A stretch of 64,000 nucleotides of DNA from positions 124,001 through 188,000 of the IMG/VR virus record IMGVR_UViG_3300026518_000006; one strand, 5' to 3'. A model generated the notes under the pieces. It saw only the letters and a list, made by a program, of their open reading frames with translations. It was not told where the DNA came from and did not search any database. Below are positions 1 through 33,817 of the stretch, one piece after another (position 1 is the first letter of the stretch; every line of letters starts with the position of its first letter). The translations under genes were made by a program, and so were the position numbers.

Positions 1-395
1 TTTTTCTTAAATCCATCTAAAATAGCGTCTGAAATCAATTTTATAGTCGTTAATTCAGGATTAATATTAACTTCCATTGAAACACCTGTATCTGTCCATT
101 TCTGTATTCTTCGTGTAACATTTATCATACTATGAGCACCGTATTGGAATTTCCCTTTATAGTACCAATATCTTGTCTTAATATAGCGTGGCAAAATCGG
201 TACACTAATATCAGCTAAAGTTTGGTAATTTAGTTTGGAGTGTGGGGGTTGCCAAGAAGCAGTAGCCCCCATCAGAATACCGCTTGATGTGTTGTGACTT
301 GCACACCCATTATCTAAGAAGTAATGGTGGTCTACCTCGACTTCAAAATCATAGGTGGGAATGGGGTCTTTTTTTGTTATTTTCTTAATTTTCAT
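1..395 (-). CDS. nrdA: Ribonucleotide reductase alpha subunit, C-terminal fragment (35-aa IntC plus C-extein), runs off the window edge
   Basis: Hand translation from ATG 395: MKIKKITKKDPIPTYDFEVEVDHHYFLDNGCASHN|TSSGILMGATASWQPP. Joined to the upstream ...LLATAPN it restores the NrdA APxxSS motif. ATGA overlap with the upstream stop. Confidence 0.9.
   Translation of the reverse strand, partial: MKIKKITKKDPIPTYDFEVEVDHHYFLDNGCASHNTSSGILMGATASWQPPHSKLNYQTLADISVPILPRYIKTRYWYYKGKFQYGAHSMINVTRRIQKWTDTGVSMEVNINPELTTIKLISDAILDGFKK
291..395 (-). other. Split intein C-half (IntC, 35 aa) of nrdA
   Basis: Block F (TYDFEV..HHYF) and block G (SHN followed by Thr+1). Confidence 0.9.
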
Positions 396-1312
396 AATAA
401 TTCCTTTAATTTATTGATTATATTTTTTAAATCTGAATTTTTGTTTATTCTGATTAATTTGTAGCCTTTTTCTAAGGCAACTTTCTCTTTCGCTTCATCA
501 TTATCGATAATTGATTGTTTATCAATTAGAAAATGGTTTACTCCTATTTCATCCTCATTATAATGATACATATACCCGTCATATTCTATTATAATTTTTT
601 TGTCCAATATTACAAAATCATAATAATATTTTCGGTCTGCTTCAACATAAAACTCTTCCATATCTTTATACCCAAAAGCGACATTCAACCCCATCCCCAA
701 ACAAAACCCCCATATAGGCAATAGAAGCTCAAGAGACTCTTTTGATGCACTCCCTTTTAATTTATTTAAAGGTGTGTATTTCCCATTATAATGTCTCAAT
801 AAAATCTCTTCATCTGATATATCAATATCATATTTTTTTCTAAAATGACTAATTATCATCTTATTGGATTGTTCGAAGTTATTTTTATAATACTTCTCGG
901 TACCTTTTTCGACACCATATCTATCGATATAACCATCTAATGTATTAGCTAATGAAACTTTTTTAGCCTTTTCAAGATATTTTTTAGTTCCTATTTCTTC
1001 ACCATACCTTGAGACGAAAGATTTCAAATCACTTGAAATTTTTCCTTTTAGTTCATTAACTTTTTCAATAGCTTCATCTTCAGAAAGATTATATCTCTCC
1101 ATTTGCTGATTAATATCATATGGATTAAACTTTCTTTTAGATTGTTTAAGGTTAAATTGTTTTCTCCCCTCTACTTCACCTAATCTGTAAATATAACTTT
1201 CTAAACTATGTCCTGTTTTTAATTTTAGTTCATTAACTTTTTCAATAGCTTCATCTTCAGAAAGATTATATCTCTCCATTTGCTGATTAATATCATATGG
1301 ATTAAATCTCAT
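392..1312 (-). mobile_element. Free-standing homing endonuclease, Vsr/DUF559-like PD-(D/E)xK C-terminal domain
   Basis: YYYDF...IIEYDGYMYH...GYKLIRI motif, N-terminal helical repeats, and position between the nrdA IntN and IntC. Confidence 0.75.
1046..1306. repeat. Two identical 84-bp direct repeats (1046-1129 and 1223-1306) inside the endonuclease gene
   Basis: Exact DNA duplication encoding FNPYDINQQMERYNLSEDEAIEKVNELK, period 177 nt. Confidence 0.95.
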
Positions 1313-1342
1313 AGCTAAATCTCCCTATATATTTAATGAGAG

Positions 1343-4300
1343 CTATTGCTTCTCATTGATATTTATAATATCATCACCCTCTTTCAATTCATCACAACGA
1401 ATCCAAATCTCTTCGCCATTTCTATAGACAAGTAATTTGTGATTGTAGGTGAATTCATAAGTATTTCCATCTTCAAATTCAATTTCTATAACAGGTTGTT
1501 TTCCGTTATACCAAATGCGGTTTACTTCACTTTCTCCGTTTAATGTAGGTACTTTTATTGCGTCTATACCTATCCATTGCGGAACATTCAACTCTTCTAT
1601 TTTTCTGTAGTCTATATTTTGTTCTTCAAGAATATCATAAATAGATTTATTGCCGTCTGTTGTTTTCATTTTATTATGACCACTTTGACAGTTTGGTGCA
1701 GTAGCCAATAATAGGAAATTTCTAATCCCTTTTTCTTGAATTTTTTTAGACATTTCAGACCACTTGAAACCATTTAGGCTCTCTTTATCAAGTTGTTTGG
1801 TATTTTTTCCGAACATTTTAGAATAATCGGCTTTATCAAATAAAGGATAAGCACCTTTTTTCTCTGCAAGTTGAACACTTCTCTCATAACAATACCAAGC
1901 GATTTTTTCGTAAACCTTTTCAAGCTCGTCTAAGTCTTCAGGCTTCTCATAAGATAATTTATTATAAGCCATCCAATCACCTGTGCCCAACACTCCAATA
2001 CCAACATTTCTAAGAAGTTTTGATGAATTTTCAGCTTCTTTTACGGGCATTGTTCCTGTTTCAATACTTGCATCCATCATATCAACAGCGTTGTAGCAAA
2101 CTCTCTTCAATAGTTTATCTTCAGGGTCGTTTACAATTAATCCCAAATTGATACTCAAAAGATTACAACTGTGGTATAGCCCATCACTTTCTGTACTCAT
2201 AACTCCATTTTTGTAGCTTTGAACCCACTCGGTAGGTGCTTTAGTAACACTAAACGACTCCGTACAATTCATAGTCATAACACCATTAAACATTAATGTA
2301 TGGTTTTTTGGTTCATTACCACAATAAGTTGCTCCTCTCAACCCTGTTCTATCTATATTTTTAACGGTAACAAATCTAATTGCACTTCTATTATATTCTC
2401 TCATAGTAGGCATAACTCTATAAGCTTTATATCCTAAATCTAATAGTTTGATGCACTCAGAACCTGCAATTAATAATCTATATAGAGGTTTAACCGTGTA
2501 TTCTTTTTTATCAGAAGACCCGTTATTTAGAGGCAATTTTCTTTCGCCTCCATTATGTACTTTTTGTACTTTAGAATTAATACCCATTTCTTGTAAGAAT
2601 AACATTAAATTATTAATGAAAATTTCATTAACAGATGCAAATTGGATGCTTTCACTGCCTTTATCGTTTGTTAGAGTACCATCACTATCCATAATACCTG
2701 CTAACCATTTTAACCGACTTTCTAAAGTGTAATCAGAAGTAGGAATAAAAAATCTATCTTTTAATAATCTTGTGTAACTAATGGTAGTTCTATTTTGGGC
2801 TTCATCTTCATTAAATGAAGTATAACCACTAAAGTTATTCACTAAAGCTCTTTTCTCGTGATACAAATAAATTCTTTGTATTCCATTGTTATCTTGAGAC
2901 CCATCCCCTGAAAAAAACCCATTCTCATAAGCCAAAGGTAGCACCTTGTCCCCACTTAAAACAGGCAAATCGAATTTGGCAAGTCTGTCACCTACACTCA
3001 ATTCTTCAGTTCTCTTAATAATTGGAGCTTTTCTGCTGTCATCCTGTACGACTAACCAACGGTGCGCTAATGTGGCATTTATCGTTTGATTATTTGATAA
3101 AGAAACTGTGACTAATTCATCATCATCACTTGTTTTGAAAAGCTCACTCATAGACCATTCGGTACCGTTCCATACTTCAATAGTTTGACCCGATACAGAT
3201 TCAATGTCCACATAACCTTGTTTGGTAAGAATTTTGGTATCACCTGATACACAAAGGTTGGCACTATTAGCGATTAAATCTTCACCTTTCAGGTAGTTAC
3301 ATAGATTTAGATTGTCTTTATGTGTAATATAAAAGTCGCCTGTTTCAACCCAAATTCTCAGAAACTCTTTCCAAAGTGCTTTTGCATTTTCCTTTTTGCA
3401 GTTTGTTAGTGTGCCTTTTTCGCATAAATCATAGATGGTTTCTTGTGCTTTATACAGCTCTTCATCAATCAAAGAAACAATATCAATCCCTGTTTTTGTT
3501 TTCACTTCATAACTATCAAAGAGATATACATCTTTGTTTTTTAAAACAGCATCCACAAAATAATCATCCACTACTACTTGTGGGAACAAGTCAAAACACT
3601 TATTTCTCAAGTCACCTTGTGTTTCGGATTTCATTTCAATAAAGCTATGAATATCACCGTGCCACCAATCCAAAGCAGGAGTAATAGCACCTTTTCGGAT
3701 TCCTCTTTGGTTTACCGCTACTGCAATATCATTGATTATTTTAGCCCATCTGATGATATTGTTGGCATTTGGGATATTGTCTGAGTACGAACCTTCAGGT
3801 CTTAAACCACCTAAATAAACTCCAATTCCGCCACCCTCTTTGGAGATTTTAGCCATATCCTGCCAAGTTTTTGTAATACTCTCAATATTGTCTAAGGTAG
3901 GAACAATAAAACAGCTACCTACATTACCACCTTCTCTTCTGAGATTTGATTTAAATGGTGTTGCTAATGAGATATACATTCTCTGTAGCATAGTGAAATA
4001 TTCTTTTGTCTTTTTAACTCTTTCACTTTCATCTTCAATGCCACCTAAAATCATAGACGAAGCCATATCAGAAAATTGAGGGTATTCAATAACTCCTCTT
4101 GAATTTTTTAGAATATACTTTGAGCGAAGACTTAACACCTGAGCAATATTCATATCAAAGTCGTACTTCGGGTTAATAGCCTTTTTGATTGTCTTTATAT
4201 CCTCTTCTGAAAAAGGCTTCATAATATCTTTTCTGTAATGATTTGTTCTGACCGCATATTTAATATACTCATCAAATTGGTCATATTCAAATTTTGTATT

Positions 4301-4573
4301 TTTATATACTTGTCTATGGAGTTGGTACATTGATAATCTACCTGCGACAATAGACATCTCAGGATGGTCTTGGTCTATCATTGATGTAGCTGTAGAAACT
4401 AATAAATCTTGAATATCAGAGGTTTTCATATTGTTTTTAAAATTCAGCGTTAGCTTTGCTTCCAACTCAAGTTGATTTTCTTTTAATCCTGTGTATGCGA
4501 ATTCAAGTTGTTTTTTAATTTTACTATTATCAAACGGTTTTTTTGAACCATCTCTTTTAATTACTGTTTTCAT
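1343..4573 (-). CDS. nrdA: Class Ia ribonucleotide reductase alpha subunit, N-terminal fragment with ATP cone, cis intein and terminal IntN
   Basis: ATP-cone start (VIKRDG), GSCF, ANL|C..N|CTE, GIGVLG, LLATAPN. Confidence 0.95.
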   Translation of the reverse strand: MKTVIKRDGSKKPFDNSKIKKQLEFAYTGLKENQLELEAKLTLNFKNNMKTSDIQDLLVSTATSMIDQDHPEMSIVAGRLSMYQLHRQVYKNTKFEYDQFDEYIKYAVRTNHYRKDIMKPFSEEDIKTIKKAINPKYDFDMNIAQVLSLRSKYILKNSRGVIEYPQFSDMASSMILGGIEDESERVKKTKEYFTMLQRMYISLATPFKSNLRREGGNVGSCFIVPTLDNIESITKTWQDMAKISKEGGGIGVYLGGLRPEGSYSDNIPNANNIIRWAKIINDIAVAVNQRGIRKGAITPALDWWHGDIHSFIEMKSETQGDLRNKCFDLFPQVVVDDYFVDAVLKNKDVYLFDSYEVKTKTGIDIVSLIDEELYKAQETIYDLCEKGTLTNCKKENAKALWKEFLRIWVETGDFYITHKDNLNLCNYLKGEDLIANSANLCVSGDTKILTKQGYVDIESVSGQTIEVWNGTEWSMSELFKTSDDDELVTVSLSNNQTINATLAHRWLVVQDDSRKAPIIKRTEELSVGDRLAKFDLPVLSGDKVLPLAYENGFFSGDGSQDNNGIQRIYLYHEKRALVNNFSGYTSFNEDEAQNRTTISYTRLLKDRFFIPTSDYTLESRLKWLAGIMDSDGTLTNDKGSESIQFASVNEIFINNLMLFLQEMGINSKVQKVHNGGERKLPLNNGSSDKKEYTVKPLYRLLIAGSECIKLLDLGYKAYRVMPTMREYNRSAIRFVTVKNIDRTGLRGATYCGNEPKNHTLMFNGVMTMNCTESFSVTKAPTEWVQSYKNGVMSTESDGLYHSCNLLSINLGLIVNDPEDKLLKRVCYNAVDMMDASIETGTMPVKEAENSSKLLRNVGIGVLGTGDWMAYNKLSYEKPEDLDELEKVYEKIAWYCYERSVQLAEKKGAYPLFDKADYSKMFGKNTKQLDKESLNGFKWSEMSKKIQEKGIRNFLLLATAPNCQSGHNKMKTTDGNKSIYDILEEQNIDYRKIEELNVPQWIGIDAIKVPTLNGESEVNRIWYNGKQPVIEIEFEDGNTYEFTYNHKLLVYRNGEEIWIRCDELKEGDDIININEKQ
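1346..1690 (-). other. Split intein N-half (IntN, 115 aa) of nrdA
   Basis: Starts CQSG after APN, block B FTYNHKLL, ends at the stop codon with no block F or G. Confidence 0.88.
2267..3253 (-). mobile_element. Cis-splicing intein (329 aa) with LAGLIDADG endonuclease, at the thiyl-radical Cys of NrdA
   Basis: CVSGDTKIL start, ATLAHRW block B, GFFSGDG and LAGIMDSDG motifs, ends NGVMTMN|C. Confidence 0.93.
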
Positions 4574-4670
4574 ATAGCCTCTTTAGTTAAGTATTTTGAT
4601 TGTATTATATAGTGGTAATTTGAAGCAAGTCTTAAAACCTATACTTTAGTACATCAAAAAGAAAGAAAAC

Positions 4671-5360
4671 CTAAACCTTTTTTAATCTGTCTACTATTAT
4701 ATTATCCATTTTGATTTTATTGTACTTCTTCATCTCATCAAAATATATATTTATTTTTTCTTTTTCAGCGGGATTGTCTATATTAGTGTATATCTCTTTT
4801 AATATATTATATTTTTCTTCCAATTTTTTATCATACTGCATCATAAAATACATAAAACTATAGCTCGTTTTCTTTTCCAGTAAAAATTTTTCTATTCTTT
4901 CTCTTAATTCAAGCGGAGTATTTTTTGAGCCGTACTCTCCGAATATATAATTTAACAGTATAGCACTATCACTGACATATCTCTTAGGTTTAGTTAGAAA
5001 GTATTCTATGTCTTTAGTGAGCTGTGTTTTTTCTTCTTCTGTGAGTTTATCTTGATTTCTTGTTTTGATGTTCATAGTCATCTCAAACACTGCATTTGGG
5101 TACAACTTCTCTATTTGTTCTTTGTGTTCTTCTATGAATTTCAGAGCATCTTCGTAGGTATTTCTTGCCTGTTCTACAACATATTCGATAGTGAAATTTT
5201 CTTTTAGCTCTTCAGTTTCGTGGTTACACTTGTTGTCAAAAGGATTAAATGGGTTGTGAATACCTATTTTTTTAAGAAAACAGTCATATTTGGCTATCAG
5301 TGGTTTAAAAGGAGTTAATAAAAATTTTGTAATTTGTATAATCTGTTCAAGCATAATCAC
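4671..5360 (-). CDS. Hypothetical protein
   Basis: 229-aa ORF on the coding strand. Confidence 0.6.
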   Translation of the reverse strand: MIMLEQIIQITKFLLTPFKPLIAKYDCFLKKIGIHNPFNPFDNKCNHETEELKENFTIEYVVEQARNTYEDALKFIEEHKEQIEKLYPNAVFEMTMNIKTRNQDKLTEEEKTQLTKDIEYFLTKPKRYVSDSAILLNYIFGEYGSKNTPLELRERIEKFLLEKKTSYSFMYFMMQYDKKLEEKYNILKEIYTNIDNPAEKEKINIYFDEMKKYNKIKMDNIIVDRLKKV

Positions 5361-5392
5361 TCTGTTTTTGATTACTTATAAAAGTTAGAAAT

Positions 5393-5408
5393 GGGTGCCG
5401 AAGCACCC
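5393..5408 (-). terminator. Intrinsic terminator with UUCG tetraloop
   Basis: GGGUGC-UUCG-GCACCC followed by a U-rich tract after the SPFH gene. Confidence 0.75.
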
Positions 5409-5419
5409 CAAACTAACCT

Positions 5420-6802: not shown

Positions 6803-6826
6803 TAGTTTTTTCCTTTGATTTTATCG

Positions 6827-7124
6827 GTACTATATGTACTCATAGAGATGTGACAGCAGAGCGGTACAGTAAACTCACCGACAAGTATAAAACCGTTTCC
6901 CCCTGATTTTATCTATCTTTAAACTTTAAGTCTTGACCTTTAAAATTTTAAACTTTAAGCTTTGAACTTTGAACTTTCATCTTTAAGCTTTAAAGGTTGG
7001 CACATCGCCTATTATTCCTATTTGCTGTAGAATGGATTCAAGTCCATAGATAAGTTCATAATATAGCTTATGAGGGCTGTCGATGTCTTATGTTTCGTCA
7101 CACCTCTATGAGTACATATAGTAC
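6827..7124 (-). ncRNA. Candidate structured RNA with a 28-bp closing stem and an AAAG heptad array
   Basis: Arms 7097-7124 and 6827-6854 pair fully on the minus strand with one G-U pair. Internal hairpins are present, and AAAG repeats at a 7-nt period. Confidence 0.6.
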
Positions 7125-9652: not shown

Positions 9653-9658
9653 AACCCC

Positions 9659-15863: not shown

Positions 15864-17321
15864 TTAATACCAATAAAATACTTTATTGCCACTATCAAAA
15901 ATTTGTCTATACCCATTATCGAACATATTTTGAAGTGCTGTTTTGTTTTCATCGAAATCAAAATCCTTAATATCTTTTAATTTATGCTTTTGAAACTTTT
16001 GTCTGCTATACAAGATATATGAATTGTGTTTAAAGAAAAAGAAATTTTTATCAGAATTATGACTAAAGAAAAACCCAAGAGTCTGATATAAATTTCCATC
16101 TGACCATCTTCGATTAGCATATGAAATTAAACTTCGTCCAATATGTTTTTTAAATCTATTTAATAGCTTGGAGGCACCACCTATAACAACTGTGTTCAAT
16201 TTTGTGCAAAACCTAACCAACTCATAATCTGCTTTTTTGTTAAATCTATTTTTAGAAAAAGTCATCACTGAAACCAACTTATTATTATAGAACAGCCCGT
16301 AATTTATCGAAGAGTGACTTCCGCCTTGCAGGTGATTATCTTCACAAAAATAAAAAGCATCTTTAGAACTAATCTCTTTAATTTCTGTATCTCTTGCATA
16401 TATTCTGTTATCAGTCTTATTTAGTCTATTTTTTATTACACTCTTCCACTTTTCTTTATTAAGAATCCACTCATTTTCAAAAATGTGTAAAAGTTGTATT
16501 CCGTTTTCTTCACAGACATCAGTTTTATGTTTATGTTTATTGGGGTTGAAATGATTTAAATTGTTCGGAAATGTTGACCCTTTTGAATGAAAGGTCAATC
16601 CATCGTATTCGATGGCTAAATTATATTCAGGTATGTATATGTCCAACTCAAAACCCAAGTGCATATCTCTTTCTATAATATTCTCTACCCCTATATCGGA
16701 TAGAAAGGATATAATCTCTTTCTCTGCATTAGATTGTTTATTGGAACATTTTGAACATCCTTGACCATTTAGATGAGCGTTTGGTTCCATTAAAAACTTT
16801 CCGTGAGTTGGACACAATATCTCAATTTTTTCTTTGCTATGTTTATATTCACTCACATATTGGTATTTGTACTGATGTTTTTTATTAAAATCTTCTACTG
16901 CTTGATTGTGGTCTTTTTTTGAATGATTGTTTCTTATAAGGTTGGCACATTTTGGACACCCAGACCCATTTTTATGGTTTTTGGGTGTCGGAAAAAAACT
17001 ACCGTGTATTTTACAAGTTACTTCGACAGGTGTTTTCATATTAATAAAATTTACTTTATCGTATGAGTATTTTTCACCGTGTACTTTTTTAAATTGTTCG
17101 ATTACGGTTTCAGTGGTGTACTTAGAGGATTTGTTGCATTTGCTACAACCTGCTCCTCTCATATGATGGTTTGGAGTCTGAGGAAACTCCCCGTGTATAG
17201 GACATATTATAATCATTGGGGTGCGGGTGTCCACTATACTATCTTCAATATATGTGTATTTATTATTGTGCTTTTCATGACACTTATTTAGTATTTCGGT
17301 TTTTGATAATTTCTTACTCAT
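15864..17321 (-). mobile_element. Hef-like homing endonuclease
   Basis: Three CPxHG..HxxGxGCxKC repeats, ELDIYIP..LAIEYDG..H nuclease motif, and C-terminal ELVRF..GGASKL domain. Confidence 0.8.
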
Positions 17322-17355: not shown

Positions 17356-18477
17356 TTAATCAAAAGCACCACTATTAATTTTTCGCATAGCATCAAAAGC
17401 TACATCAGGGTCATATGAACTCATATTTTGAAGCATACGGTCTTTCGTATAATCATCACTGCCATCATCAAACCCACCATCTGTGTCTAATAATGAATAA
17501 TAATCTGCTGTTTTTACACCATCTTCATCTTCTTCAGTATCTAAATCTATATTCTTTCTTAATACATCTAAAAATAAATCAAAATCATCAAACGCTTTTA
17601 TGTGCATAAATGGGGCAAAAATAATAGCTAAACTCATTATCATATCATCGTGATAGCCCTCTTCAGCTTCATATTTTTTCTTCACATTATCGCTTTTAAT
17701 GAAGTTAAAAAATTCGTTGATAGTATCTCTGTCTTGAACTATTAATTTCCCCTCTTCTATAAAAATCTTCAACATATTGATAATAAGAGGTCTTGATTTT
17801 ACAGTAGTTCTAAATCCGTAATATTTTTTATATTTTTTGTCTCCGTCATCTCTATCCCGATACATATTTGGATATTCGTAGTTGAGGTATAAAATATCGG
17901 CTACACTTTGTCCTGCACCTTCATTATTTTCGATAACTAAAAAAGCTTCATTATAATAAAGCCCTAATGTTTCAATATATTCAGGCATAACAAGATAATC
18001 TACATCTAATTTAGCTGAAGCAACCTGTATAAATGGAAATTTTGTAATATCAACCACTTGAATACTAAAACTATCTATCCCTTCTTTTGATGGGTCAATA
18101 CCAATGATGTAATTATGTCCTTTTATAGGTTTTTCATAAATATTAATCCCGCTGAATATGGTATCTTTAGCGACAGGTTCTTGTGGCACCATTAACTTCA
18201 ATCTTTCTGTACTAATCAGTGTTGAGGCAGAGCCAAGAAATTCACACGCCTCTGTTTGTGCGAAGAATTGTGCTCCATTTCTTGCTATTGTTTGTTTCTT
18301 GTACTCTTGAGGGGATAAAGGATTTCCTTTTTTATCAAAATGAGGAACTTCAGTCCAACTCGCTGTTACCAATCGGTGCCCGCTTTTGGACTTAAAAATA
18401 TTATATTTTACTGTATATGTCCCGTCAGGGTTTTTAATTATCTCTTTAATATCATTTATAGATTTTATTTTAAGCAT
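17356..18477 (-). CDS. gp17: Large terminase fragment 4 (nuclease domain)
   Basis: CEFLGSASTLI, IIGIDPS, IENN, HDDMIMSLAI. Confidence 0.92.
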   Translation of the reverse strand: MLKIKSINDIKEIIKNPDGTYTVKYNIFKSKSGHRLVTASWTEVPHFDKKGNPLSPQEYKKQTIARNGAQFFAQTEACEFLGSASTLISTERLKLMVPQEPVAKDTIFSGINIYEKPIKGHNYIIGIDPSKEGIDSFSIQVVDITKFPFIQVASAKLDVDYLVMPEYIETLGLYYNEAFLVIENNEGAGQSVADILYLNYEYPNMYRDRDDGDKKYKKYYGFRTTVKSRPLIINMLKIFIEEGKLIVQDRDTINEFFNFIKSDNVKKKYEAEEGYHDDMIMSLAIIFAPFMHIKAFDDFDLFLDVLRKNIDLDTEEDEDGVKTADYYSLLDTDGGFDDGSDDYTKDRMLQNMSSYDPDVAFDAMRKINSGAFD

Positions 18478-19100
18478 TATTCAACATCCATTATAATAGG
18501 GTGACGCTCTATAGTATGAAATTCTTTATAAATTTCTTCCAACGAAAATTCACCTAAAGCATCAATTTCGATTGTATCATCTTCAGACAACACAACTTCT
18601 TCGTCTTTAAAATTGATATTTTTAGCACCCTCCACTAGTTGAAAAAAGTGGTTCATACCATTAGCTGTAGAAGTGTTTATAACCTGTTTAAATATCAATG
18701 AGTTCATAGTAGGTATTACAGCATCGATAAAGTCATCCCAATCTTTTGATTTTATATAACCCGCTTCGTCAGTGTAGATAATATTGCAATTATGAGACTC
18801 AATCATATTTGTTGTATATGTGTGCCCCCTTACACCCACAACATCATAAAACTCAAAAGCCCCCTCTTTGTGAGTAATATTTTTTATTACACCATTGGAT
18901 ATTTTATCACCAACTTTTAAATTTTTGGCTTGTCTAAAAATTTTTCCTGATTTTGATTTTCCTACTAATAATCTATGGTCTTCGGTACATTTTAAACTAC
19001 TATTGTCAGTTTCAATATAGTAAAGTATTTTTTTATTAATTCGTCTAACTGTTTCAAAATCTTCATACCCTCTCTCAGTTTTTATCATATAATCGTTCAT
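18477..19100 (-). CDS. gp17: Large terminase fragment 3: IntC2 (104 aa, 18789-19100) plus Walker B and coupling motif
   Basis: CTEDH block B, ends ESHN|CNIIYTDEAG, STANGMNHF. Confidence 0.9.
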   Translation of the reverse strand: MNDYMIKTERGYEDFETVRRINKKILYYIETDNSSLKCTEDHRLLVGKSKSGKIFRQAKNLKVGDKISNGVIKNITHKEGAFEFYDVVGVRGHTYTTNMIESHNCNIIYTDEAGYIKSKDWDDFIDAVIPTMNSLIFKQVINTSTANGMNHFFQLVEGAKNINFKDEEVVLSEDDTIEIDALGEFSLEEIYKEFHTIERHPIIMDVE

Positions 19101-19971
19101 AAAAAGCTCCTATTAGATTTTCTTTTGTTATAGATGATTTCCAATTTTTAGATGAATTTAATTCTGATGGCAACATCTCTAAATTAATGATATTTCCTAT
19201 TATATAAGGAGGGATACCTTCCTTAAACCCCATAATTTTTGAAAATTTATGGTCTATATTATAAAAACCTTTTCCTCTCCCTCTTTTGTTATAGTTCGTC
19301 AAGGTATATAAATCTTGAGCTTTAGTTACTTTATCCACTTCTCTACAGTATAATTCATAATCTGAGAGTTCACTTTCTTTTACCCAAAGTCCGTTAATTT
19401 CCTTTAATTTTCTATAATTTTTTACTCTACATTTTATTTTCCCACAAGTAGGTCTATACCCTTGTCCATATGATAAATATTTTCTTGGTTTACAACAATA
19501 TTCACATTTTGGCTCTTCTTTCATATCATTCATAAATAAATATATATTTTTAGATATATTATTTGTTATTTTAGGTATAGAACCATAGATATCCATTATT
19601 AACTGATTTTTATTATGGTAGTTATCGGGTTTTATTTTGGATATGTAATTTTTAAGGTCATTTACGGATTTATCGAGTTTATTTTCAAGTTTCGGTGCAT
19701 TTAAATCATCCATTTGGCATTTGTGTGAGCAATATTTAGCATAACCATCTGATATATTTTTAAATTTTGTTTTTGCACCACATTTACATATTGGGGGTAT
19801 TAAAATGTTATGTTTTATAATATATAGCAACTCATTCAATTTATTTGTAGTTGGTGGAATTTTTGCATTTTCTAATAATTTTTGATAGTGAATTTTATAG
19901 AACTCAGATTTTGATGTTAATTTTCCAAAGCTTTCAAACTCTAACAACTCAATAATTGACAGTTCTTTCAT
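19075..19971 (-). mobile_element. Free-standing HNH homing endonuclease with Zn-ribbon repeats
   Basis: NIDHKFS...NLEML..LNSSKN motif and two PxC..C..F..GY..C repeats. Lies between IntN2 and IntC2. Confidence 0.75.
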
Positions 19972-20659
19972 ATAACTCTTTTATAGTAATTTTTTCTTCT
20001 TTTAATGTTTTTTTATTTATAACTTCTACCGTAGTATCAGGAGATACACAAGTATATCCACGAAAGCTGTCACTTGATGGGCTGTCTGTCATAATCCTTG
20101 TGCCGTTTTCAAACTCGATATTTGATTTGTTCCACACCGATATCCCATTCATAAGCCATATTGGAAGCTCTAAGAAAACCTTTTTAATTTTATCCAATAC
20201 TTCACGGGCTGTGGACGGTTTATTGGCTACAATCCCAATATTTATAGCAGTATCGTGAAACATAGCTCTCCACAACAGATAGTTGCCCACTGTAACCGTA
20301 TTATGGCTAAGAATATCATTAGTGTAATAAAGATTATCCCCACTAACACTTAAATCATACATTTCTTCTGAGTACCCTAAATCTATTACTTTCGTTACTT
20401 TTGAATCGCCTTTTTTTGTATTTAAGATTTTTCCTAAACTATTTTTTGCAAATACTTCTTGAAAGTCATTAGTAATTAAAATATGGTCATCAGCACACTT
20501 TATTTTTAGTCCATTTTGCAGGTGCACTTCATATAATCTGTATTTAACAGTTTTATTAGTTTTAGTTATATCTCTCCAACCATCGTGGCTTTCGACTTGC
20601 CAATCATTGACATCAAATTGTTCTGTAAATTTTCGGTTTATTTTATCTGATAGTTTCAT
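19949..20659 (-). CDS. gp17: Large terminase fragment 2: IntC1 (120 aa), 83-aa extein, IntN2 (33 aa)
   Basis: CADDH block B, LSHN|TVTVGN...DSFRGYT|CVSPDTTVEV. Confidence 0.92.
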   Translation of the reverse strand: MKLSDKINRKFTEQFDVNDWQVESHDGWRDITKTNKTVKYRLYEVHLQNGLKIKCADDHILITNDFQEVFAKNSLGKILNTKKGDSKVTKVIDLGYSEEMYDLSVSGDNLYYTNDILSHNTVTVGNYLLWRAMFHDTAINIGIVANKPSTAREVLDKIKKVFLELPIWLMNGISVWNKSNIEFENGTRIMTDSPSSDSFRGYTCVSPDTTVEVINKKTLKEEKITIKELYERTVNY

Positions 20660-21918
20660 TATTTTAGCCCATATTTATTTTTAAAATTTGTAGTGAAATT
20701 TTCCAAATCTTTTTTATTTATTTTTAATATGTTTTGTAATATATCTTCATCAAAACATTCAGTAGAAGAAAAATGATTATACTTCTTCGTTACTCTATTA
20801 TTCTTCGATAAAATATATTGCTCTTTATAGAAAGCTTTATCGTAAGGCATTTTCTCTGTATAGATAACATTATATGATAATCCGTTTTTGACTTCAAATA
20901 TTGACTGACTCCCCCACCTTGATATAATTCCTTGAGATGTTATGCCTATTTTATAAAAAACATCTCTTGAATTATAAAACTTAATATAATAAAGAATAGT
21001 TTCTGTATTTTTTGCCCAATAGTTTTTCTTTCTTATCAAATCTATACTCCATCCTATGTGCTCACCTTTCCCTTTATCTCTATTAATTCTCTCTAATTCT
21101 TCTTTTGGTTTTGATTGTAGAGTTTTTTGCCACTTTTGTTGTCTTTGATTAAATATAATTAATCCTTCTTCACCATATCTCTCAATACATTTCTCTAAAG
21201 AAAAAGTGCTTTGTCGTTCTGATAATAATCTTTTAGCTTCATTTTCATTATAACCTCGTTTTAAATAATACTCTAAAGTACAATCATTATTACCATTTTC
21301 CTTATTCGATTTCGATATTTTAGAATGAACTTCATTTATTTTTTGCTGTTTTTCTTCCTCTGTTAAACCTTGATATTTTATAAAGTTTTTAGAGCCACTT
21401 GAATACTTTCCACCGTGATTTTTGGCAGGATTATTATCTGAAGTGAACCCCTTTACTTGTTTGTCAATATTATGTAGTCCATATCGTACAATAGTTCCTA
21501 ATAGTCCATTTGATTTCTTTACATTTAATATATATCGTTGTCTTTCAAGGAACTTTGTTTTCATCCCATCAGATATAAACTTAGCAAAATTATCTATCTT
21601 CATATATTCGCCTTTATTTAAATAATATAGGCACTTTTTTAACTCTCTGAATTGAGATAATGTAGGAAATTTATTTAAGTTACTATAAAAGGATTTTTGA
21701 TTGAATAACCACCTTAAATCTTTTTCTTTATATGGTTTACCTTTGTTATCCAATTTAATTTTCAATTTAATTTTCAATTTATCTATTTCATTTTTATGAA
21801 CTAAATTAGTTGTTTTATTATAAGGAATGTATTCAACTTCTGAAAAGTCTATATATGGTATTTTTGAAACTCTTATATAGTTTGGCGAATAATGAAGTCT
21901 TCTGTTTACTTTGCTCAT
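20659..21918 (-). mobile_element. Free-standing homing endonuclease, GIY-YIG/T5orf172-like C-terminal domain
   Basis: LYYIKF...FYKIGIT....R...EQ motif and RYGEEG repeat. Lies between IntN1 and IntC1. Confidence 0.7.
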
Positions 21919-22480
21919 TTATCATTTCGTGGAATTCACCAATCGGCATTTTCACTAATTCTCCTGTGTGTTTGTTTTTTATATTTATAATAGTTGAAAA
22001 GTCGTTGCATTTACCGCTCTGTCTCGGATAAAGTACAACTAAATCCTCTAAACTCAGGAGCTCATCTTCTAAAAATACTTGGTATCTTCTTGGTTCAGGT
22101 CTTGCCAATCCTGTTTTTGTAGTGATGAAACAATAATTACTTCTGAAATATTTAAATGATTTCTTACACTTTTCTATTTCTATTTTGTGCAGAGTATTTA
22201 AATCTAATTCAGTTTTTTCACGCTTTAAAACACGAATACCATTGTATGATATTTTATTGCCGTATTTATCGGTATAATAACCATTTTCATTTCTTGGAGG
22301 TGTTAATAATAACAACAAGCCATCGTGTTCTTCAGGAGTCCAATCATAGGTATTCTGCACAAATTTTAAAAATGTTTTTTCCTCTAATAATTGGTCTAAT
22401 AAATCATAGATGTATTCATCTTCAGTGAGGTCTTTTACTTTAGTCAGTAGTTTTCTGTATTTTTTATCTAAATTAGTCAT
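21833..22480 (-). CDS. gp17: Large terminase fragment 1: N-terminus to Walker A plus short IntN1 (from 22009)
   Basis: EIEKCKKSFKYF..NY, RRYQ, PRQSGK|CNDFSTIINI. Confidence 0.9.
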   Translation of the reverse strand: MTNLDKKYRKLLTKVKDLTEDEYIYDLLDQLLEEKTFLKFVQNTYDWTPEEHDGLLLLLTPPRNENGYYTDKYGNKISYNGIRVLKREKTELDLNTLHKIEIEKCKKSFKYFRSNYCFITTKTGLARPEPRRYQVFLEDELLSLEDLVVLYPRQSGKCNDFSTIINIKNKHTGELVKMPIGEFHEMINEQSKQKTSLFAKLYKSFKNTIYRLFRS

Positions 22481-26919: not shown

Positions 26920-26950
26920 TTTCAAATCCTTTTCACTCTAAATATACTGT

Positions 26951-26979: not shown

Positions 26980-26989
26980 GCTCTTTTAA

Positions 26990-27028
26990 ATATTTTACTT
27001 TTTTAAAAAGTAAAATATTTAAAAGAGC
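26990..27028. repeat. Palindromic intergenic element, copy 3
   Basis: ATATTTTACTTTTTTAAAAAGTAAAATATTTAAAAGAG, with both arms changed in a compensatory way (G to T, C to A). Confidence 0.8.
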
Positions 27029-27045
27029 CCATAAAGGCTCCTCTG

Positions 27046-27771: not shown

Positions 27772-27906
27772 TCCTTTTTAATAATATGGTAGAGAAAGTA
27801 TAAGACAAAAAGCCTTTAATATACCTTAATAGAATAATATTTTAAAGGGATTTTTAGATTGTTTGTAGATTATTGGATAAGATTAGTGAACACAATGGCT
27901 CACTAA

Positions 27907-28923: not shown

Positions 28924-28931
28924 ATGGTGCC

Positions 28932-29864
28932 TTATGCGATTTCCGCTAAGAGGTCGTCAATTTCACTGTCAACATCAGCTTTAGGCTGTTCTTTAGGAGC
29001 TTCAGCTTTTGGTTGTTCTTTGGTTTCAGGTTTTTTATCTCCCAAATCCAATCCTGTGTTGAGTGAAGCTTGCACCTCAGCGTCTTGAATTGCTTTTTCT
29101 TCAGAGCCACTTTCTGCTTGTGGGGCATATTTGCCTCTTTGGAGGAATCTATCAAGCTTATCCGAAAGCTCTTCATATGATAGGAATTTCTCAGGGCTTA
29201 GGAACTCTGAAAGCACATAAGTATTCTCCATAATGTCTTTTTCTGCTTCTTCTTTTGAAGAGTAGATTGAAGTCACTTTATCCGAGAATTTTGAAGATGA
29301 ATAGGTTGGAATACCATTATCACCATCTTTTACTTTGATGAGGTAGTTATTACCCTCAAGAGGGTTGTAAACAGCGATAGGTTCTTCTTCGAGTGCCTTC
29401 ATAGCCTCTGTCTGAATCATAACCTCTTTAATGCTATCCATCATAGTGCTTGACATCTCATATAAGAAAATCTTGCCTTCGTTTTCAGGATTTGCAGGGT
29501 CTTTGATAACCTTGATGTTTGTAATGAAACGGAATTGTCTTCCAAGTGTTTTAGCAGTTTCTTTATCTCCTGCTTTCCACAACTTGCTAAACTCATCATT
29601 AAACGGGCACTTCATACCAATAGTCTGTGGAGACCAGTCGTTTACGAAATAACCTTTATTGCCTTTTCTTGCATTGATTTTAATCATCTTTACAAAAGGC
29701 ACACCGTTCTTGTCAGGTAAGAAGCGAATAATCGCACCACCATTACCATTTTCATCACGAGAGAGTTTCCAAAAACGAGAGTCTTCTTCTTTCTCATAAG
29801 TTTTCTTGTCATTAAATGCGTTCTCTTGCAGTTTTCCTGCCATTGCTTCCCAACTAAAATCCAT
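28932..29864 (-). CDS. gp32: Single-stranded DNA-binding protein gp32
   Basis: DSRFWKLSRDENGNGGAIIRFLP, NIKVIKDPANPENEGKIFLY, acidic tail DDLLAEIA. Confidence 0.93.
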   Translation of the reverse strand: MDFSWEAMAGKLQENAFNDKKTYEKEEDSRFWKLSRDENGNGGAIIRFLPDKNGVPFVKMIKINARKGNKGYFVNDWSPQTIGMKCPFNDEFSKLWKAGDKETAKTLGRQFRFITNIKVIKDPANPENEGKIFLYEMSSTMMDSIKEVMIQTEAMKALEEEPIAVYNPLEGNNYLIKVKDGDNGIPTYSSSKFSDKVTSIYSSKEEAEKDIMENTYVLSEFLSPEKFLSYEELSDKLDRFLQRGKYAPQAESGSEEKAIQDAEVQASLNTGLDLGDKKPETKEQPKAEAPKEQPKADVDSEIDDLLAEIA

Positions 29865-30106
29865 AACTTTTCCTTTAAGTCTTTTTACTGTGAGTAGTAC
29901 CCTACTCTAATTTTAAGTGCTTATACCTAAACACTACAAAATTGTTACCATAGTTCGAACCCGAACTAACCAAAATGTTTACGCCTGTCTTGTTGAAAGA
30001 CATCTGTATTCTATGACAATACTCTTAAAATTTTCTTAGGATTTCAAGAGCAATCTTTAGGTTTTACAAAGCCAACAAATACAATATTGACTTCAACTAT
30101 TTTCGC
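29865..30106 (-). promoter_or_regulatory. Structured 5' leader of gene 32
   Basis: 242-nt non-coding gap with hairpins at 29892-29907, 29951-29968, 29986-30002 and 30006-30022. Confidence 0.5.
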
Positions 30107-30802
30107 TTACGCTCTAATAGAAAGTACAAATTTAAAAATAGCATTTTCCATAGTAACACGGTAACTATCTCTTCTTTCGTTATACTTAATTTTAAGTGCG
30201 CTTTCCATTGTTGGAAGAGACAGAAAGTTGTTAATAGGAATAGCGATTTCAAAATTTTTGCCTGTAGATTTTTCAGGGTCTAATTTAATCATATAGCTAT
30301 TATCTCTTGAAGCAAAGGACTCTTTATTTCCTGTTTTTAAAAACACACCTTCATCATTTTTGATAATAAACAGGTCTTTTAATGTCTTAAAAACAGAAGC
30401 CCCTTTTCTAATTTTGGCAATAAGGTCTTTATCAACCTTGACTTCTACAACAGATGGTGCATCTATAATACTCGTGATATTAATCATATCTGTGGTAAAA
30501 TCACTCAAGGAAATAGGAGAAGATGTAATAAAGCTAATTTGAGAAGTGTCATCTTTAGCTATAATCTCTTTGTTTTCGAGAGTAATTGTAGGTTCCTCAA
30601 GCACATCAATAGCGTTTAAAAAACTACCCAAATCCATAATACCAAACTCTTCAAATTCATCAGGGTCAATTACACTAAAATCAATTGTGCCCAATACATC
30701 AGCATCAGCATTGATAATTGTAGTTACAGGGTAAGATATAATTGCAGAGTTGGTGATTGATGTCACACTTTGCAAGACTTTGATAGACTCTTTATTTAAC
30801 AT
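30107..30802 (-). CDS. gp45: Sliding clamp gp45
   Basis: MLNKESIKVLQSVTSI, EEFGIMDLGSFLNAI, length and context. Confidence 0.8.
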   Translation of the reverse strand: MLNKESIKVLQSVTSITNSAIISYPVTTIINADADVLGTIDFSVIDPDEFEEFGIMDLGSFLNAIDVLEEPTITLENKEIIAKDDTSQISFITSSPISLSDFTTDMINITSIIDAPSVVEVKVDKDLIAKIRKGASVFKTLKDLFIIKNDEGVFLKTGNKESFASRDNSYMIKLDPEKSTGKNFEIAIPINNFLSLPTMESALKIKYNERRDSYRVTMENAIFKFVLSIRA

Positions 30803-30885
30803 TTTTGCTCCTAAATTCGTACATTAATTTTTGTATATTACAGGTTTATATTGAAACTAATCTTAAAACTATACCAAAGTATAGT

Positions 30886-31800
30886 TTAAATATTGGGTAG
30901 AGTGACTTCTTTAGTTAAAATGGGGTGTCCTTCTGATACATAGTACATTTCTCTTTCATAAAAGTGTTTTAAACTATAGGTGTCTTTAACATAAGTGAAC
31001 ACATCTACTAAATCAAAAACATATACATTATCACCTTTTTCTTTATGTAACCTCATAATTCTACCCATAGCTTGAAGTACTAGAGTATATGATTTTGTTG
31101 AGCTCAAAAACACAAGGTTCTTTAGTCTTGGGATGTTGATACCTGTACTCAAAACATTATATTGTCCTATTACAATAGCATTCTCACAAGTATTAAGGTA
31201 AAGTCTAATCTGCTCTCTAACACTTGATTTTGTGTTTCCACTCATAAAGAAAACATTGTGTTTTTTCATAAACTCAAAGTCAGATTTTCTTTTATTGGTA
31301 AGCTTCTCACCTGTTAAACTTTCAAAAGTATCTTCCCCGTGTGCAGTGACAGCGTATAAGGCTACTGTAACCCCTTTAAGTTTTTCTAAAAACTGTTTTA
31401 CAAACAACTGTCTTGATTTGCTTTCTCTTATGAATTTTGTTTCTTCCTGATACTTCATACCACTTTTGGTTTGGTTTCGTGGATGTGTTAAGAAAATAGC
31501 CATAATAGTTGTGTCTGTTAATAAGCCCATCTCAATTAGTTGTCTTGCATTAACAATTCTTTCGGGTTTTCCCAATGCTTGCTCTAATAACATAGCATCT
31601 TCTTCTATGATAGGCATAGAGCCAGTCATACCCAATTTTATCTCACAAGGTTGCTTTAATATAGACTGAAGTACTTCAGCTTTAGCTTGGTGACAATTAG
31701 ACACTAAAATGTTATTGGCATAATAATTGTGGTTGTTTTCTATATGTAAATTATAAGTATCACCTTGAAACTCAACCTTTTTTATGGACTTTATCTTCAT
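30886..31800 (-). CDS. uvsW: UvsW helicase C-terminal fragment (35-aa IntC at 31696-31800 plus extein)
   Basis: MKIKSIKKV...ILVSN|CHQAK, GMTGS, STGINIP, QAMGRIMR. Confidence 0.92.
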   Translation of the reverse strand: MKIKSIKKVEFQGDTYNLHIENNHNYYANNILVSNCHQAKAEVLQSILKQPCEIKLGMTGSMPIIEEDAMLLEQALGKPERIVNARQLIEMGLLTDTTIMAIFLTHPRNQTKSGMKYQEETKFIRESKSRQLFVKQFLEKLKGVTVALYAVTAHGEDTFESLTGEKLTNKRKSDFEFMKKHNVFFMSGNTKSSVREQIRLYLNTCENAIVIGQYNVLSTGINIPRLKNLVFLSSTKSYTLVLQAMGRIMRLHKEKGDNVYVFDLVDVFTYVKDTYSLKHFYEREMYYVSEGHPILTKEVTLPNI

Positions 31801-32857
31801 TCTTACCCTTTAGTTTTTCCAATTTTTGTATCGCATTTGTTACTTTATCGGTATTTTCATCATCCAATTTAATATTAGCGAATAACTCTTTTATATTGCT
31901 TAAATTTTTAATCAGATAATCCTCTGTTATAATTTTATATGAGTAATTATTTTCTTCACACCAAACCAAAGCACTATCTTCTTTTGCTATATTTCGAGCA
32001 TTGAGTATTAGTGATTTTGGTTTTATTTCGAATATTATATTATGTTTGTTATCTGTAAAATCCACAATATATGTGTGTATACTATCTTCAAATAAATATG
32101 GTATTCTAGTGGTTTCATATAGTGTATTTGGGTTCAACAAATAAAACATAAATTCCCAAGAGCTCCTAAAATTAAAATTGCCAAATTTTATTCTGCTTCT
32201 CGACCAAGAGTTGGTAATACACGGGGTAAATTCTCCGCTTGCAATTTTTGATTTCATTATTATAGAGTTATGTTTGGCTATCTTCTTTTTTGTCTCTTTT
32301 GACATTTTATGAGCAGGGTTGTTTTTTCTCATCCGCTCAGAACATAATAATTGTCTACATTTTTCATTACAGGTTTTTCTATTCAATGATGAAGATTGTG
32401 CCCTTTTAATTTTATTACCACAATAATCGCAATATAGTGGGTCTATTTCATCAATATATTCTATTCTTGACAATCTAAGCAAGTTCGGAAATTTTAAATC
32501 TGCTCCAACAAAAAGTAAATATTTCATATAATTATCATTATCATCTATAAATGAATATTTAGGGGTAGTTGTTGATTTATACTTTGGTAAATTATTTTTT
32601 AATGTTTCGTATGTAACATTTTCTACAATCCTACCACTATAATCCCAATTTCCAAGAACTAGCTTTAAGTCATAAATGTCATCTTTAAAAGCATTGAATA
32701 TAAAGGCATATTTTATCGTTTTGTTGCCTTTATATTCATAAAAGAGCGTCCTTAAATCTTCACGATATATTAAAATTTGTTTTATTATTTTTGATTTTAA
32801 TGGTTTTGACAGCTTGTTTGGATTAAGTGTTTTTAAATATTTTTTATAATCATCCAT
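31772..32857 (-). mobile_element. Free-standing endonuclease, TnsA-like PD-(D/E)xK domain
   Basis: FRSSWE...YE..IPY...YIVDF...EIKP, with CDYC..C..C and NUMOD3-like segments. Lies between the uvsW IntN and IntC. Confidence 0.75.
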
Positions 32858-32860
32858 ATC

Positions 32861-33817
32861 TTATTTATAGGGCAGAAGCTCATCAGTTAACACCAACTCG
32901 TCTACTCTAACATAACCTCGTTGTGTAAATACCTTATGATTACCTGTGATATATAGCTTTCCGTTATCTGTTTCTATCTCATACATCTGTTCGTTTGATA
33001 TATTTTTATGTGTTTTTAGTACTTGATTGTATTCATTTTGTTTGGTAGTTTCATTGTATGTCATAACTAAATCTCCTTCAGTTATACTGCCGATTGGCAC
33101 ATCTCCATTAATAGTTTTAATCAAAGTATCACCTCTTAGACACTCATCAACCAAGATAGCGTCATATAGTCTTACATCTTTCATAACTTTGTTCAAGCTT
33201 TGCCAAGTGGTGATTATATAGGGTTTATCCAACGCTTTATCATCATTCTCACCACCAATTAGTTTAATACTGTCAAGCATCTCTTTTGGGGCATTGTAAT
33301 CTTTAAAATCTTGGAACATTTGAGATGTTAATCCGATTGTGGGGACTACTAATATAGTCGGGATATCGTGGTCGAAAAAGTATTTTAAAACCAAATAAGC
33401 AACCATTGACTTGCCACCACCTGTGGCAATAATATCCAATTTATTTCTACTTCTAATAAGGCTTAGAAAGCCTTTTAGTTGGTGTTTATAGGGGGTAAAG
33501 GGTAGGGTAGGGATAACGCTTTTCAAGAAGTCTATAGCATCATCACGCTCTAATGGCGGTAATAATTCAACTTTATCGAATTCAATATTTTCTATAAGAC
33601 GCTCTTTAAAACCTTTTTCAACTTTGAAATATTTACCATCTTTATAATTCTGAGCTTGATAAAATCGAGTATATCCATCATCTTTGCCCATTTGAACTCT
33701 AGGTTCGTGCTCTGAATTTAGTCTTTTGGCTCTAAGTAGCTTATCAATCTTGAATACAGTGTCTCTATTATTAGTGAATAGGTTAAGATGATGTTTCGCC
33801 TCATTTAATATTGTCAT
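32861..33817 (-). CDS. uvsW: UvsW helicase N-terminal fragment plus IntN (93 aa, 32864-33142)
   Basis: PYKHQ, ATGGGKS, VVPT, TTWQSL, LVDE|CLRGDT, ITGNHKV block B. Confidence 0.92.
   Translation of the reverse strand: MTILNEAKHHLNLFTNNRDTVFKIDKLLRAKRLNSEHEPRVQMGKDDGYTRFYQAQNYKDGKYFKVEKGFKERLIENIEFDKVELLPPLERDDAIDFLKSVIPTLPFTPYKHQLKGFLSLIRSRNKLDIIATGGGKSMVAYLVLKYFFDHDIPTILVVPTIGLTSQMFQDFKDYNAPKEMLDSIKLIGGENDDKALDKPYIITTWQSLNKVMKDVRLYDAILVDECLRGDTLIKTINGDVPIGSITEGDLVMTYNETTKQNEYNQVLKTHKNISNEQMYEIETDNGKLYITGNHKVFTQRGYVRVDELVLTDELLPYK

Follow-up and report, generated by a model that had tools for sequence, protein, structure and literature searches.

Introduction

Fractured genes were described by Dassa et al. 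in 2009 for gp41-1, gp41-8, NrdJ-1, IMPDH-1, NrdA-2 and 'Terminase' (PMC2677866). In these loci, phage-type genes for DNA metabolism or packaging are laid out on one strand as an extein joined to an N-terminal intein half (IntN), a free-standing homing-endonuclease gene, and a C-terminal intein half (IntC) joined to the remaining extein. The IntN fragments measured 88-105 amino acids (aa) and the IntC fragments 33-54 aa, and one terminase intein was split unusually early, leaving a 122-aa IntC (PMC2677866). A split after the first helix is defined as the S2 position (PMC13014065), and reviews cite only four characterised natural atypical split inteins, namely AceL TerL, GOS TerL, VidaL and PolB16. 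Here we analyse a 64,000-nucleotide stretch (the window) of the IMG/VR virus record IMGVR_UViG_3300026518_000006, in which the genes for ribonucleotide reductase (NrdA), UvsW helicase and the large subunit of the DNA-packaging terminase (TerL) are, with high probability, fractured by four split inteins that are predicted to splice in trans.

The window loci have the same one-strand layout as those of Dassa et al., and their fragment sizes are similar. They differ in position, host and number: the split NrdA intein lies at APN/TSS, whereas the NrdA inteins of Dassa et al. lie at the thiyl-radical Cys; UvsW is not among the earlier host proteins; and the window holds four loci on a single genome, with terL alone accounting for two. 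The phage is T4-like, and its loci are a rich multi-locus case of the known fractured-gene layout, not a new kind of system; they leave the general understanding of inteins and fractured genes unchanged. Whereas the fractured-gene arrangement was already known, the new element, judged from sequence, is the presence of non-allelic members of the atypical TerL split-intein group.

Four split inteins in three fractured genes

A preliminary description of this segment had proposed four split inteins of two architectures, and the fragment sizes, positions and +1 residues that it gave were all reproduced to the residue by translation of open reading frames (ORFs) and scripted motif location (Table 1). 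Two pairs (NrdA and UvsW) combine a long IntN with a short IntC, two pairs (TerL-1 and TerL-2) combine a short IntN with a long IntC, and all four lie within 33 kb. A fifth, contiguous intein in NrdA was absent from that description. In each of the four split pairs the halves are ordered on the same strand and bracket a free-standing endonuclease ORF, and all four of these ORFs match endonuclease families in PHROGs. The ATG that opens each IntC ORF overlaps the 3′ end of an endonuclease gene, in most cases with a Shine-Dalgarno-like sequence, and the ORFs overlap or abut.

Table 1. Predicted extein, intein and endonuclease features of the nrdA, terL and uvsW loci, in window coordinates
Feature	Coordinates	Strand	Evidence
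UvsW-like SF2 helicase N-extein, aa 1-238, ends in motif II LVDE	33143-33856	-	Pfam ResIII/DEAD; PHROG DNA helicase; homologues annotated UvsW
UvsW split IntN, 93 aa, starts VDE/CLRGDTL, block B ITGNH	32864-33142	-	PT-HINT, Intein_splicing, Hint_2
UvsW endonuclease ORF, 361 aa, TnsA-like PD-(D/E)xK, between halves	31772-32857	-	PF08722; PHROG 15427 4e-41
UvsW split IntC, 35 aa, MKIKSI...LVSN/CHQ, +1 Cys, restores DE/CH	31696-31800	-	Intein_splicing positions 122-155
UvsW C-extein (helicase C-terminal domain)	30886-31695	-	Pfam Helicase_C; PHROG 9690
TerL piece 1 extein, aa 1-157, ends in Walker A PRQSGK	22010-22480	-	PHROG terminase large subunit; alignment to phiKT1024 TerL
TerL-1 atypical IntN, 58-aa ORF tail, starts PRQSGK/CNDFST; core ~30-35 aa (CNDFSTIINIKNKHTGELVKMPIGEFHEMI)	21836-22009	-	
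TerL-1 endonuclease ORF, 419 aa, between halves	20659-21918	-	PHROG 681; orthologue in same place in L008
TerL-1 IntC, 120 aa, block B CADDH, ends LSHN/TVTVG, +1 Thr	20300-20659	-	PDB gp41-1 4.9e-9, CatC 4.9e-5
TerL piece 2 extein, 83 aa, between IntC-1 and IntN-2	20051-20299	-	57% identity to phiKT1024 TerL residues 169-235
TerL-2 atypical IntN, 33 aa, starts FRGYT/CVSPDTT	19952-20050	-	Cys (C204) invariant in family alignment
TerL-2 endonuclease ORF, 298 aa, HNH-like C-terminus, between halves	19075-19971	-	PHROG 5104, 3339 'homing endonuclease'
TerL-2 IntC, 104 aa, block B CTEDH, ends ESHN/CNIIYTDEAG, +1 Cys	18789-19100	-	CatC 3.4e-5; Intein_splicing 4.4e-6
TerL piece 3 extein; 46-aa C-terminal tail at 18480-18617; TAA stop overlaps next ATG	18477-18788	-	
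TerL piece 4, 373 aa, rest of ATPase and nuclease domain; 28-aa N-terminal head at 18394-18477	17356-18477	-	Pfam Terminase_6C
Homing-endonuclease-like ORF, 485 aa, free-standing, just downstream of terL	15864-17321	-	PHROG 559 7e-138, 3339 3e-104
NrdA N-extein 1, aa 1-440 (ATP-cone, RNR all-alpha, barrel start)	3254-4573	-	Pfam PF03477, PF00317, PF02867; PHROG ribonucleotide reductase large subunit
NrdA contiguous intein, 329 aa, LAGLIDADG domain	2267-3253	-	LAGLIDADG_3 2e-10, Intein_splicing
NrdA middle extein, aa 770-961	1691-2266	-	Pfam and boundary script
NrdA split IntN, 115 aa, starts APN/CQSGHN (after LLATAPN), block B FTYNH	1346-1690	-	Intein_splicing 2.5e-15
NrdA endonuclease ORF, 306 aa, between halves	392-1312	-	PHROG 22677, 559 'HNH endonuclease'
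NrdA split IntC, 35 aa, MKIKKI...ASHN/TSSG, +1 Thr	291-395	-	translation and script
NrdA C-extein, runs past left window edge	1-290	-	Pfam Ribonuc_red_lgC positions 449-514

The residues associated with protein splicing are present in every pair. All four IntNs start with Cys1 (APN/C in NrdA, VDE/C in UvsW, PRQSGK/C in TerL-1 and FRGYT/C in TerL-2), which is invariant in three family alignments, and all pairs have the block B His (TYNH, TGNH, ADDH and TEDH, in the same order). The terminal Asn and +1 nucleophile read SHN/T, VSN/C, SHN/T and SHN/C. Homology to the HINT fold was detected with the Pfam families PF14890, PF07591 and PF13403, and inteins were the top sequence matches in the PDB; the NrdA IntN matched the Pab PolC intein (2.2e-6) and also the RadA intein, and the UvsW IntN matched the Spl DnaX intein (1.1e-6) and NrdJ-1 (7e-6). 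Removal of the inserts restores colinear, conserved host proteins, with Pfam domains of ribonucleotide reductase (RNR) and of the helicase spanning the junctions.

We propose that inteins invaded three essential genes and that free-standing homing-endonuclease genes later interrupted the intein coding regions. Each host gene would thereby have become a series of ORFs pointing the same way (extein-IntN, then endonuclease, then IntC-extein), whose pieces are translated separately. Cognate halves would then associate into a HINT fold and splice in trans to yield intact proteins. NrdA would require one cis and one trans splice and UvsW one trans splice, and the N-terminal 343 aa of TerL would be joined from three pieces by two trans splices before binding a separately encoded C-terminal piece non-covalently.

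Several observations weigh against this proposal. Block B of TerL-1 has Ala in place of Thr, and the UvsW IntC has Ser, not His, before its terminal Asn, although DnaE split inteins likewise end in SN. Most fragment matches to Intein_splicing fall below its gathering score of 35.8 bits, as expected for half-domains, and only NrdA exceeds it. We infer splicing itself, its kinetics and the orthogonality of the pairs from sequence, and trans-splicing of the four pairs is a prediction. Viability of the phage is likewise unproven, because the record is uncultured and is estimated to be 86% complete.

The ORF layout also bears on whether the endonuclease ORFs reside within self-splicing introns, such that the mRNA would encode contiguous inteins and trans-splicing would be unnecessary. 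TerL of Campylobacter phage IBB_35 is annotated in this way, as an intein plus an intron enclosing a homing endonuclease (PMC3322345). Here, neither group I nor group II intron models gave a match at E<=0.1 in window positions 1-34500, and the overlapping ORFs leave no space for intron cores. Moreover, the IntN ORFs end in stop codons, the IntC ORFs begin with ATG at structurally expected positions, and the layout agrees with the experimentally validated fractured genes gp41-1, NrdJ-1 and IMPDH-1. We therefore regard introns as extremely unlikely and favor separately translated intein halves.

Two atypical split inteins in the terminase gene

In alignment, the concatenated TerL exteins are colinear with the uninterrupted 632-aa TerL of phiKT1024. 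The first junction falls within Walker A (RQSGK/T) and the second directly before Walker B (FRGYT/CNIIYTDE). The middle piece is a single 236-aa chain comprising IntC-1, the 83-aa extein and IntN-2. Searches with this double-split middle piece returned 163 matches at E<=1e-5, 25 of which were aligned over their full length, and Cys1, the block B His and the SHN motif (H59, S118, H119, N120) are invariant among the 25. The same TerL arrangement recurs in the related locus L008.

Both TerL inteins conform by sequence to the S2-type atypical split, for which we took an IntN of about 25-37 aa (two strands and the first helix) and a long IntC containing block B. The 58-aa length of the TerL-1 IntN reflects the extension of its ORF into the endonuclease gene, and the 86 nucleotides (nt) at 21833-21918 (minus strand) belong both to the tail of the IntN ORF and to the start of the endonuclease ORF. 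Relative to L008, substitutions at the first, second and third codon positions of this IntN number 8/2/13 in its first 91 nt and 8/7/5 in the 86-nt overlap; the third-position excess is thus limited to the first 91 nt, with no clear codon-position bias in the overlap. Both reading frames of the overlap look conserved relative to L008.

A word-indexed search with the TerL-1 IntN region found only itself, and an exhaustive search of representatives was needed. Among the best 150 representatives (clustered at 50% identity) retrieved with piece 1, 147 were new matches, and 75 of these carry Cys directly after the Walker A lysine (GK/C). In 64 of the 75, the ORF ends 30-72 aa further on, mostly after 30-40 aa. 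All four intein families are common in metagenomes.

Insertion points vary among homologous TerL inteins: PRQ/SGKT occurs as well as PRQSGK/T at the first site, and RGFSIN/, ..SLLY/ (or ..LLY/) and ..VIDE/ occur as well as RGYT/ at the second (including L010:37-1062). Among relatives, the intein position appears to shift slightly, by a few residues, near Walker A and Walker B. IntCs of the TerL-1 type also match the N-termini of DnaB/gp41-like (PF03796) and ClpX-like AAA+ (PF07724) proteins of ~360-410 aa (P0103-P0120), and atypically split or P-loop inteins of the TerL-1 lineage may be present in other ATPases. The best solved-structure match of the TerL-1 IntC is gp41-1 (PDB 6QAZ; 4.9e-9, residues 25-128 of 128). 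Both inteins are inserted in a P-loop ATPase, but the host proteins differ, and the split in gp41-1 is conventional, close to the canonical site of endonuclease insertion, whereas that in TerL-1 comes after ~30 residues.

Described inteins of similar architecture are AceL-TerL, GOS-TerL and the consensus Cat-TerL (PDB 6DSL), which share with the window TerL inteins the S2 split, a short IntN with Cys1, a ~104-120-aa IntC with block B and a T4-like large terminase as host; TerL-2 also shares the +1 Cys. The window inteins are nonetheless not allelic with them, as CatC matches at only 3e-5 to 5e-5, and TerL-1 lies in Walker A (+1 Thr) and TerL-2 before Walker B. L008 has a split intein at a third TerL site (..TEE/CAFLGS). 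Its IntC gives a value of 2e-15 against the Cat consensus (6DSL_B), begins with MFK... in the same way and has the same C-E/A-F +1 context, which assigns the AceL, GOS and Cat-TerL inteins to the third site. In the window this site is empty (AQTEA/CEFLGS; Cys78 of piece 4, 18244-18246, minus strand), whereas L008, L009 and L011 have a split intein there and L010 has a contiguous mini-intein. At the third site of L011 (6651-8843) and L009 (1178-2653), the endonuclease is fused in frame to the long IntC, giving ORFs of 730 and 491 aa. Such fusions suggest transitional forms, with a full-length intein carrying an early-inserted endonuclease on one side and a fractured gene on the other.

Overall, the window adds two natural, predicted atypically split inteins at TerL sites other than the AceL/GOS site, one of them with the Cys1/Thr+1 combination. 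Inteins of this type are not rare: the at least 64 clusters (50% identity) with a short IntN at the Walker A site provide a pool for mining short-tag ligation tools. In addition, the IntC-extein-IntN middle piece implies that three TerL pieces are joined in nature by two homologous inteins between which cross-reaction has to be avoided, and the TerL pair would offer a natural setting in which to identify the residues that determine split-intein specificity.

A terminase encoded by two genes

TerL is in four pieces, not three: the preliminary description had missed a break at 18477, where stop and start codons overlap (TAATG). This third break has no intein, and lacks Cys1, the terminal HN and a +1 nucleophile. 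It falls within a ~70-aa insertion that the TerLs of phiKT1024 and L011 lack; neither the 46-aa tail of piece 3 nor the 28-aa head of piece 4 is found in these contiguous proteins, and the tail is kept in intein-free relatives. At least 10 clusters share the break. A programmed frameshift at 18477 was considered and ruled out: the downstream frame is offset by -1 in the window and L010 and by +1 in L008, and this disagreement between contigs is incompatible with a frameshift site. The TAATG overlap, together with a GGAGG Shine-Dalgarno sequence in L016, also disfavors frameshifting.

Intein-free relatives provide an independent view of the predicted ligation products. The N-terminal TerL proteins (TerL-N) P0040, P0043 and P0048 are 343-346 aa long and 86-93% identical to the middle-piece extein. 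They contain ...LYPRQSGKTVTVGNYLLW... and ...FRGYTCNIIYTDEAGYIK..., and at the two junctions they read PRQSGKTVTVG and FRGYTCNIIYTDEAG, exactly the products predicted for the window; they end in the same tail as piece 3. In locus L016, which has the same gene neighborhood and order, the genes for TerL-N (346 aa) and a C-terminal TerL protein (TerL-C, 377 aa) lie side by side and overlap, and neither inteins nor endonucleases are present. A TerL-C with the same start occurs in at least nine further clusters. The intein-free L016 and the conserved start of TerL-C in other clusters indicate that a two-gene TerL is the ground state of the clade. We conclude from these comparisons that the two-gene TerL is probably ancestral in this phage clade and that the two split inteins and their endonucleases are later insertions into the N gene.

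Structure prediction is consistent with assembly of the two gene products. ESMFold2 models of the TerL N and C pieces gave an ipSAE of 0.82, compared with 0.00 for the best of 3 controls, although the model may have memorised single-chain TerL folds, which could account for part of this score and counts against the proposed non-covalent assembly. Of 80 solved complexes, 58 reached this mark, as did 2 of 110 mismatched pairs; these counts are rough since our own alignments were used. The modelled interface is predicted to include tail residues 304-333 and head residues 10-49. A precedent is the split NrdA of Aeromonas phage Aeh1, which is assembled without splicing by tails derived from a mobE insertion (PMC3045599). 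In both cases an essential enzyme is encoded by two adjacent genes with extra C- and N-terminal tails that are missing from contiguous homologues. In contrast to Aeh1, no endonuclease gene separates the TerL pieces at 18477, and the role of the tails here comes from the model alone.

The same precedent raises the question of whether the four intein pairs splice at all, or instead serve only as association domains or mark dead genes, as in Aeh1 NrdA. Tail assembly without splicing is established for Aeh1 (PMC3045599), and at 18477 this TerL clearly manages with a break that has no intein. However, all catalytic residues are kept in the four pairs and are invariant across diverged homologues, whereas non-splicing domains would be free to lose them, as the TerL tail and head did. 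The junctions cut Walker A and motif II, where a 150-aa insertion is probably incompatible with ATPase function. Dead genes are also disfavored by this conservation, and no second copy of terL, nrdA or uvsW was found in the 235.6-kb record. We consider non-splicing halves very unlikely relative to trans-splicing at the two TerL, the NrdA and the UvsW junctions.

The tail and head at the third break could themselves be the remnant of a third atypical split intein that lost its catalytic core and was kept as a non-covalent clamp, although we judge this origin unlikely. The TerL-N tail (..DDTIEIDALGEFSLEEIY..) resembles an IntN without Cys1 (C..G.T.V.VR.K.TG...ITI.ELY), with hhalign P values of 9.8e-5 and 5.9e-4, and this profile likeness is suggestive. 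Between the 28-aa head and atypical IntC N-termini, only 6 columns could be aligned (P 0.04), so that the head shows no significant match. If the relic reading were true, TerL maturation would rely both on a domesticated assembly module of intein origin and on natural trans-splicing in tandem by two atypical inteins that are paralogous and necessarily orthogonal.

NrdA and UvsW loci in related phages

The thiyl-radical site is the commonest RNR intein site (PMC2677866), and it is this site, shared with the NrdA inteins of Dassa et al., that holds the contiguous NrdA intein of the window. Its boundaries read SANL/C...TMN/CTESF, with the +1 Cys aligning with the thiyl-radical Cys, and the polypeptide that carries it ends in the split IntN. 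The endonuclease ORF between the split halves ends in a nuclease-like D..EYDG..H motif, and its stop codon overlaps the IntC start (ATGA). The C-extein ORF extends ~72 nt beyond the window (genome ORF 123928-124410). The split NrdA intein recurs in L031 and L033 (MKIKKIENG...SHN/TSG), where NrdA is in three pieces and the thiyl-radical site holds a second split intein, not a contiguous one. In L031 there is no endonuclease between the NrdA intein halves, and the NrdA middle piece has the IntC-extein-IntN layout of the TerL middle piece. At L033:2207-4201, the NrdA IntN seems further broken or partly duplicated, with an 85-aa ORF repeating the distal half of the IntN before the IntC piece.

The UvsW C piece opening with an IntC is encoded in 13 IMG/VR contigs. 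L020 and L025 keep the order IntN, TnsA-like endonuclease, IntC, with a homologous ORF in the same place, and PHROGs already lists the N piece with its IntN and the C piece with its IntC as distinct families. A cultured example is Proteus phage PM2 (NC_055727, Straboviridae; L034, 101056-103788), whose UvsW gene is likewise fractured at DE/CH by a conventional split intein, with an IntN of ~93 aa (LMNDE/CFDGDTL...), an ORF between the halves and an IntC of 35 aa (MRLKSIKEI...AHN/CH). The shared C piece (IntC and C-extein) is ~30% identical between PM2 and the window. In the PM2 record the three ORFs bear only the labels 'DNA helicase', 'hypothetical protein' and 'DNA helicase', and we found no description of them as a split intein.

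Since the record is a metagenome assembly, the breaks could in principle be assembly or frameshift artefacts of the contig. The same breaks and intervening ORFs nevertheless occur in independent contigs of other samples and in a cultured phage genome, and the intervening segments are coding ORFs of 0.9-1.3 kb rather than indels. An artefact is scarcely credible on this evidence, and we retain genuinely fractured genes as the explanation.

Orthogonality of the split pairs

The preliminary description further proposed that selection against harmful chimeras has specifically made the four pairs orthogonal to one another, so that they constitute a ready-made toolkit. This addition to the trans-splicing scheme is possible but, on balance, doubtful. 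The points in its favor come from TerL, where IntC-1 and IntN-2 share one chain and the IntN families are homologous, so that avoidance of exon-skipping or cyclisation plausibly needs selected specificity; moreover, the double-split middle piece is kept in at least 25 diverged clusters and is thus evolutionarily stable.

For NrdA and UvsW, no selection need be invoked. The preliminary description had pointed to the similar MKIKKI and MKIKSI starts of the two 35-aa IntCs, and 13 of 35 residues are indeed identical, but the likeness lies mostly in the first strand and in blocks F and G, which are common to all inteins. Identity between like fragments is just 30-38% (IntC/IntC 13/35 and IntN/IntN 28/88 for NrdA versus UvsW; 34/96 for the TerL IntCs and 10/33 for the TerL IntNs). 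Co-expression of nrdA and uvsW, and the placing of both in the replication phase, are assumptions. In T4, uvsW belongs to the late genes.

Orthogonality is the default among unrelated split inteins. Pinto et al., in the largest matrix published, found 15 of 16 unrelated split inteins to be mutually orthogonal, with no shared-genome history invoked, and residual cross-talk arose mainly from atypical short-fragment splits (PMC7090010). Taken together with the low identity, this result means that orthogonality of NrdA and UvsW is expected by default and gives no sign of special selection. By comparison, reviews and later papers report that the GOS and AceL TerL IntN fragments are interchangeable, so relatedness, rather than co-residence on one genome, predicts cross-reaction.

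These considerations shift attention to the terminase. The TerL IntN families are homologous (hhalign probability 98.5%, P 2.5e-15, 34 columns), and the two TerL IntCs match each other at 2.5e-5. By these sequence relationships, the critical pair for cross-reaction would be TerL-1 and TerL-2, rather than NrdA and UvsW. Mispairing of the two would be expected to skip or cyclise the 83-aa segment between Walker A and Walker B. Complex-prediction models do not tell HINT halves apart by their specificity. A claim of orthogonality is thus plausibly better aimed at the two TerL inteins.

Genome setting

The source record is an uncultured IMG/VR virus of 235,593 bp, of which the window covers bases 124001-188000. 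The GC content is ~31%, and the minus strand carries every gene in window positions 1-40000. Neighboring genes are of T4 type and encode a gp32-like single-stranded DNA-binding protein, a sliding clamp, an RNase H-like exonuclease, a DnaB-like helicase and major head proteins. A megablast search of the TerL region against 50,697 phage records gave no match, indicating a phage without a close sequenced isolate. At the protein level, the TerLs closest to that of the window belong to Vibrio phiKT1024-like phages and to Campylobacter phages (44-49% identity).

Five inteins were found in the segment, four split (NrdA, UvsW, TerL-1 and TerL-2) and one contiguous (NrdA). No further inteins were detected in the 235.6-kb record using Pfam PF14890 or phmmer searches of nine fragments against all ORFs. 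The single extra phmmer match, at 223639-224250 (E 0.006), was rejected as a chance PIPTYD match in a secreted-type protein. The endonuclease ORF at 15864-17321 is missing from the intein-free locus L016, as judged by gene order. A second large free-standing HNH/homing-endonuclease-like ORF lies at 52620-54179 on the minus strand.

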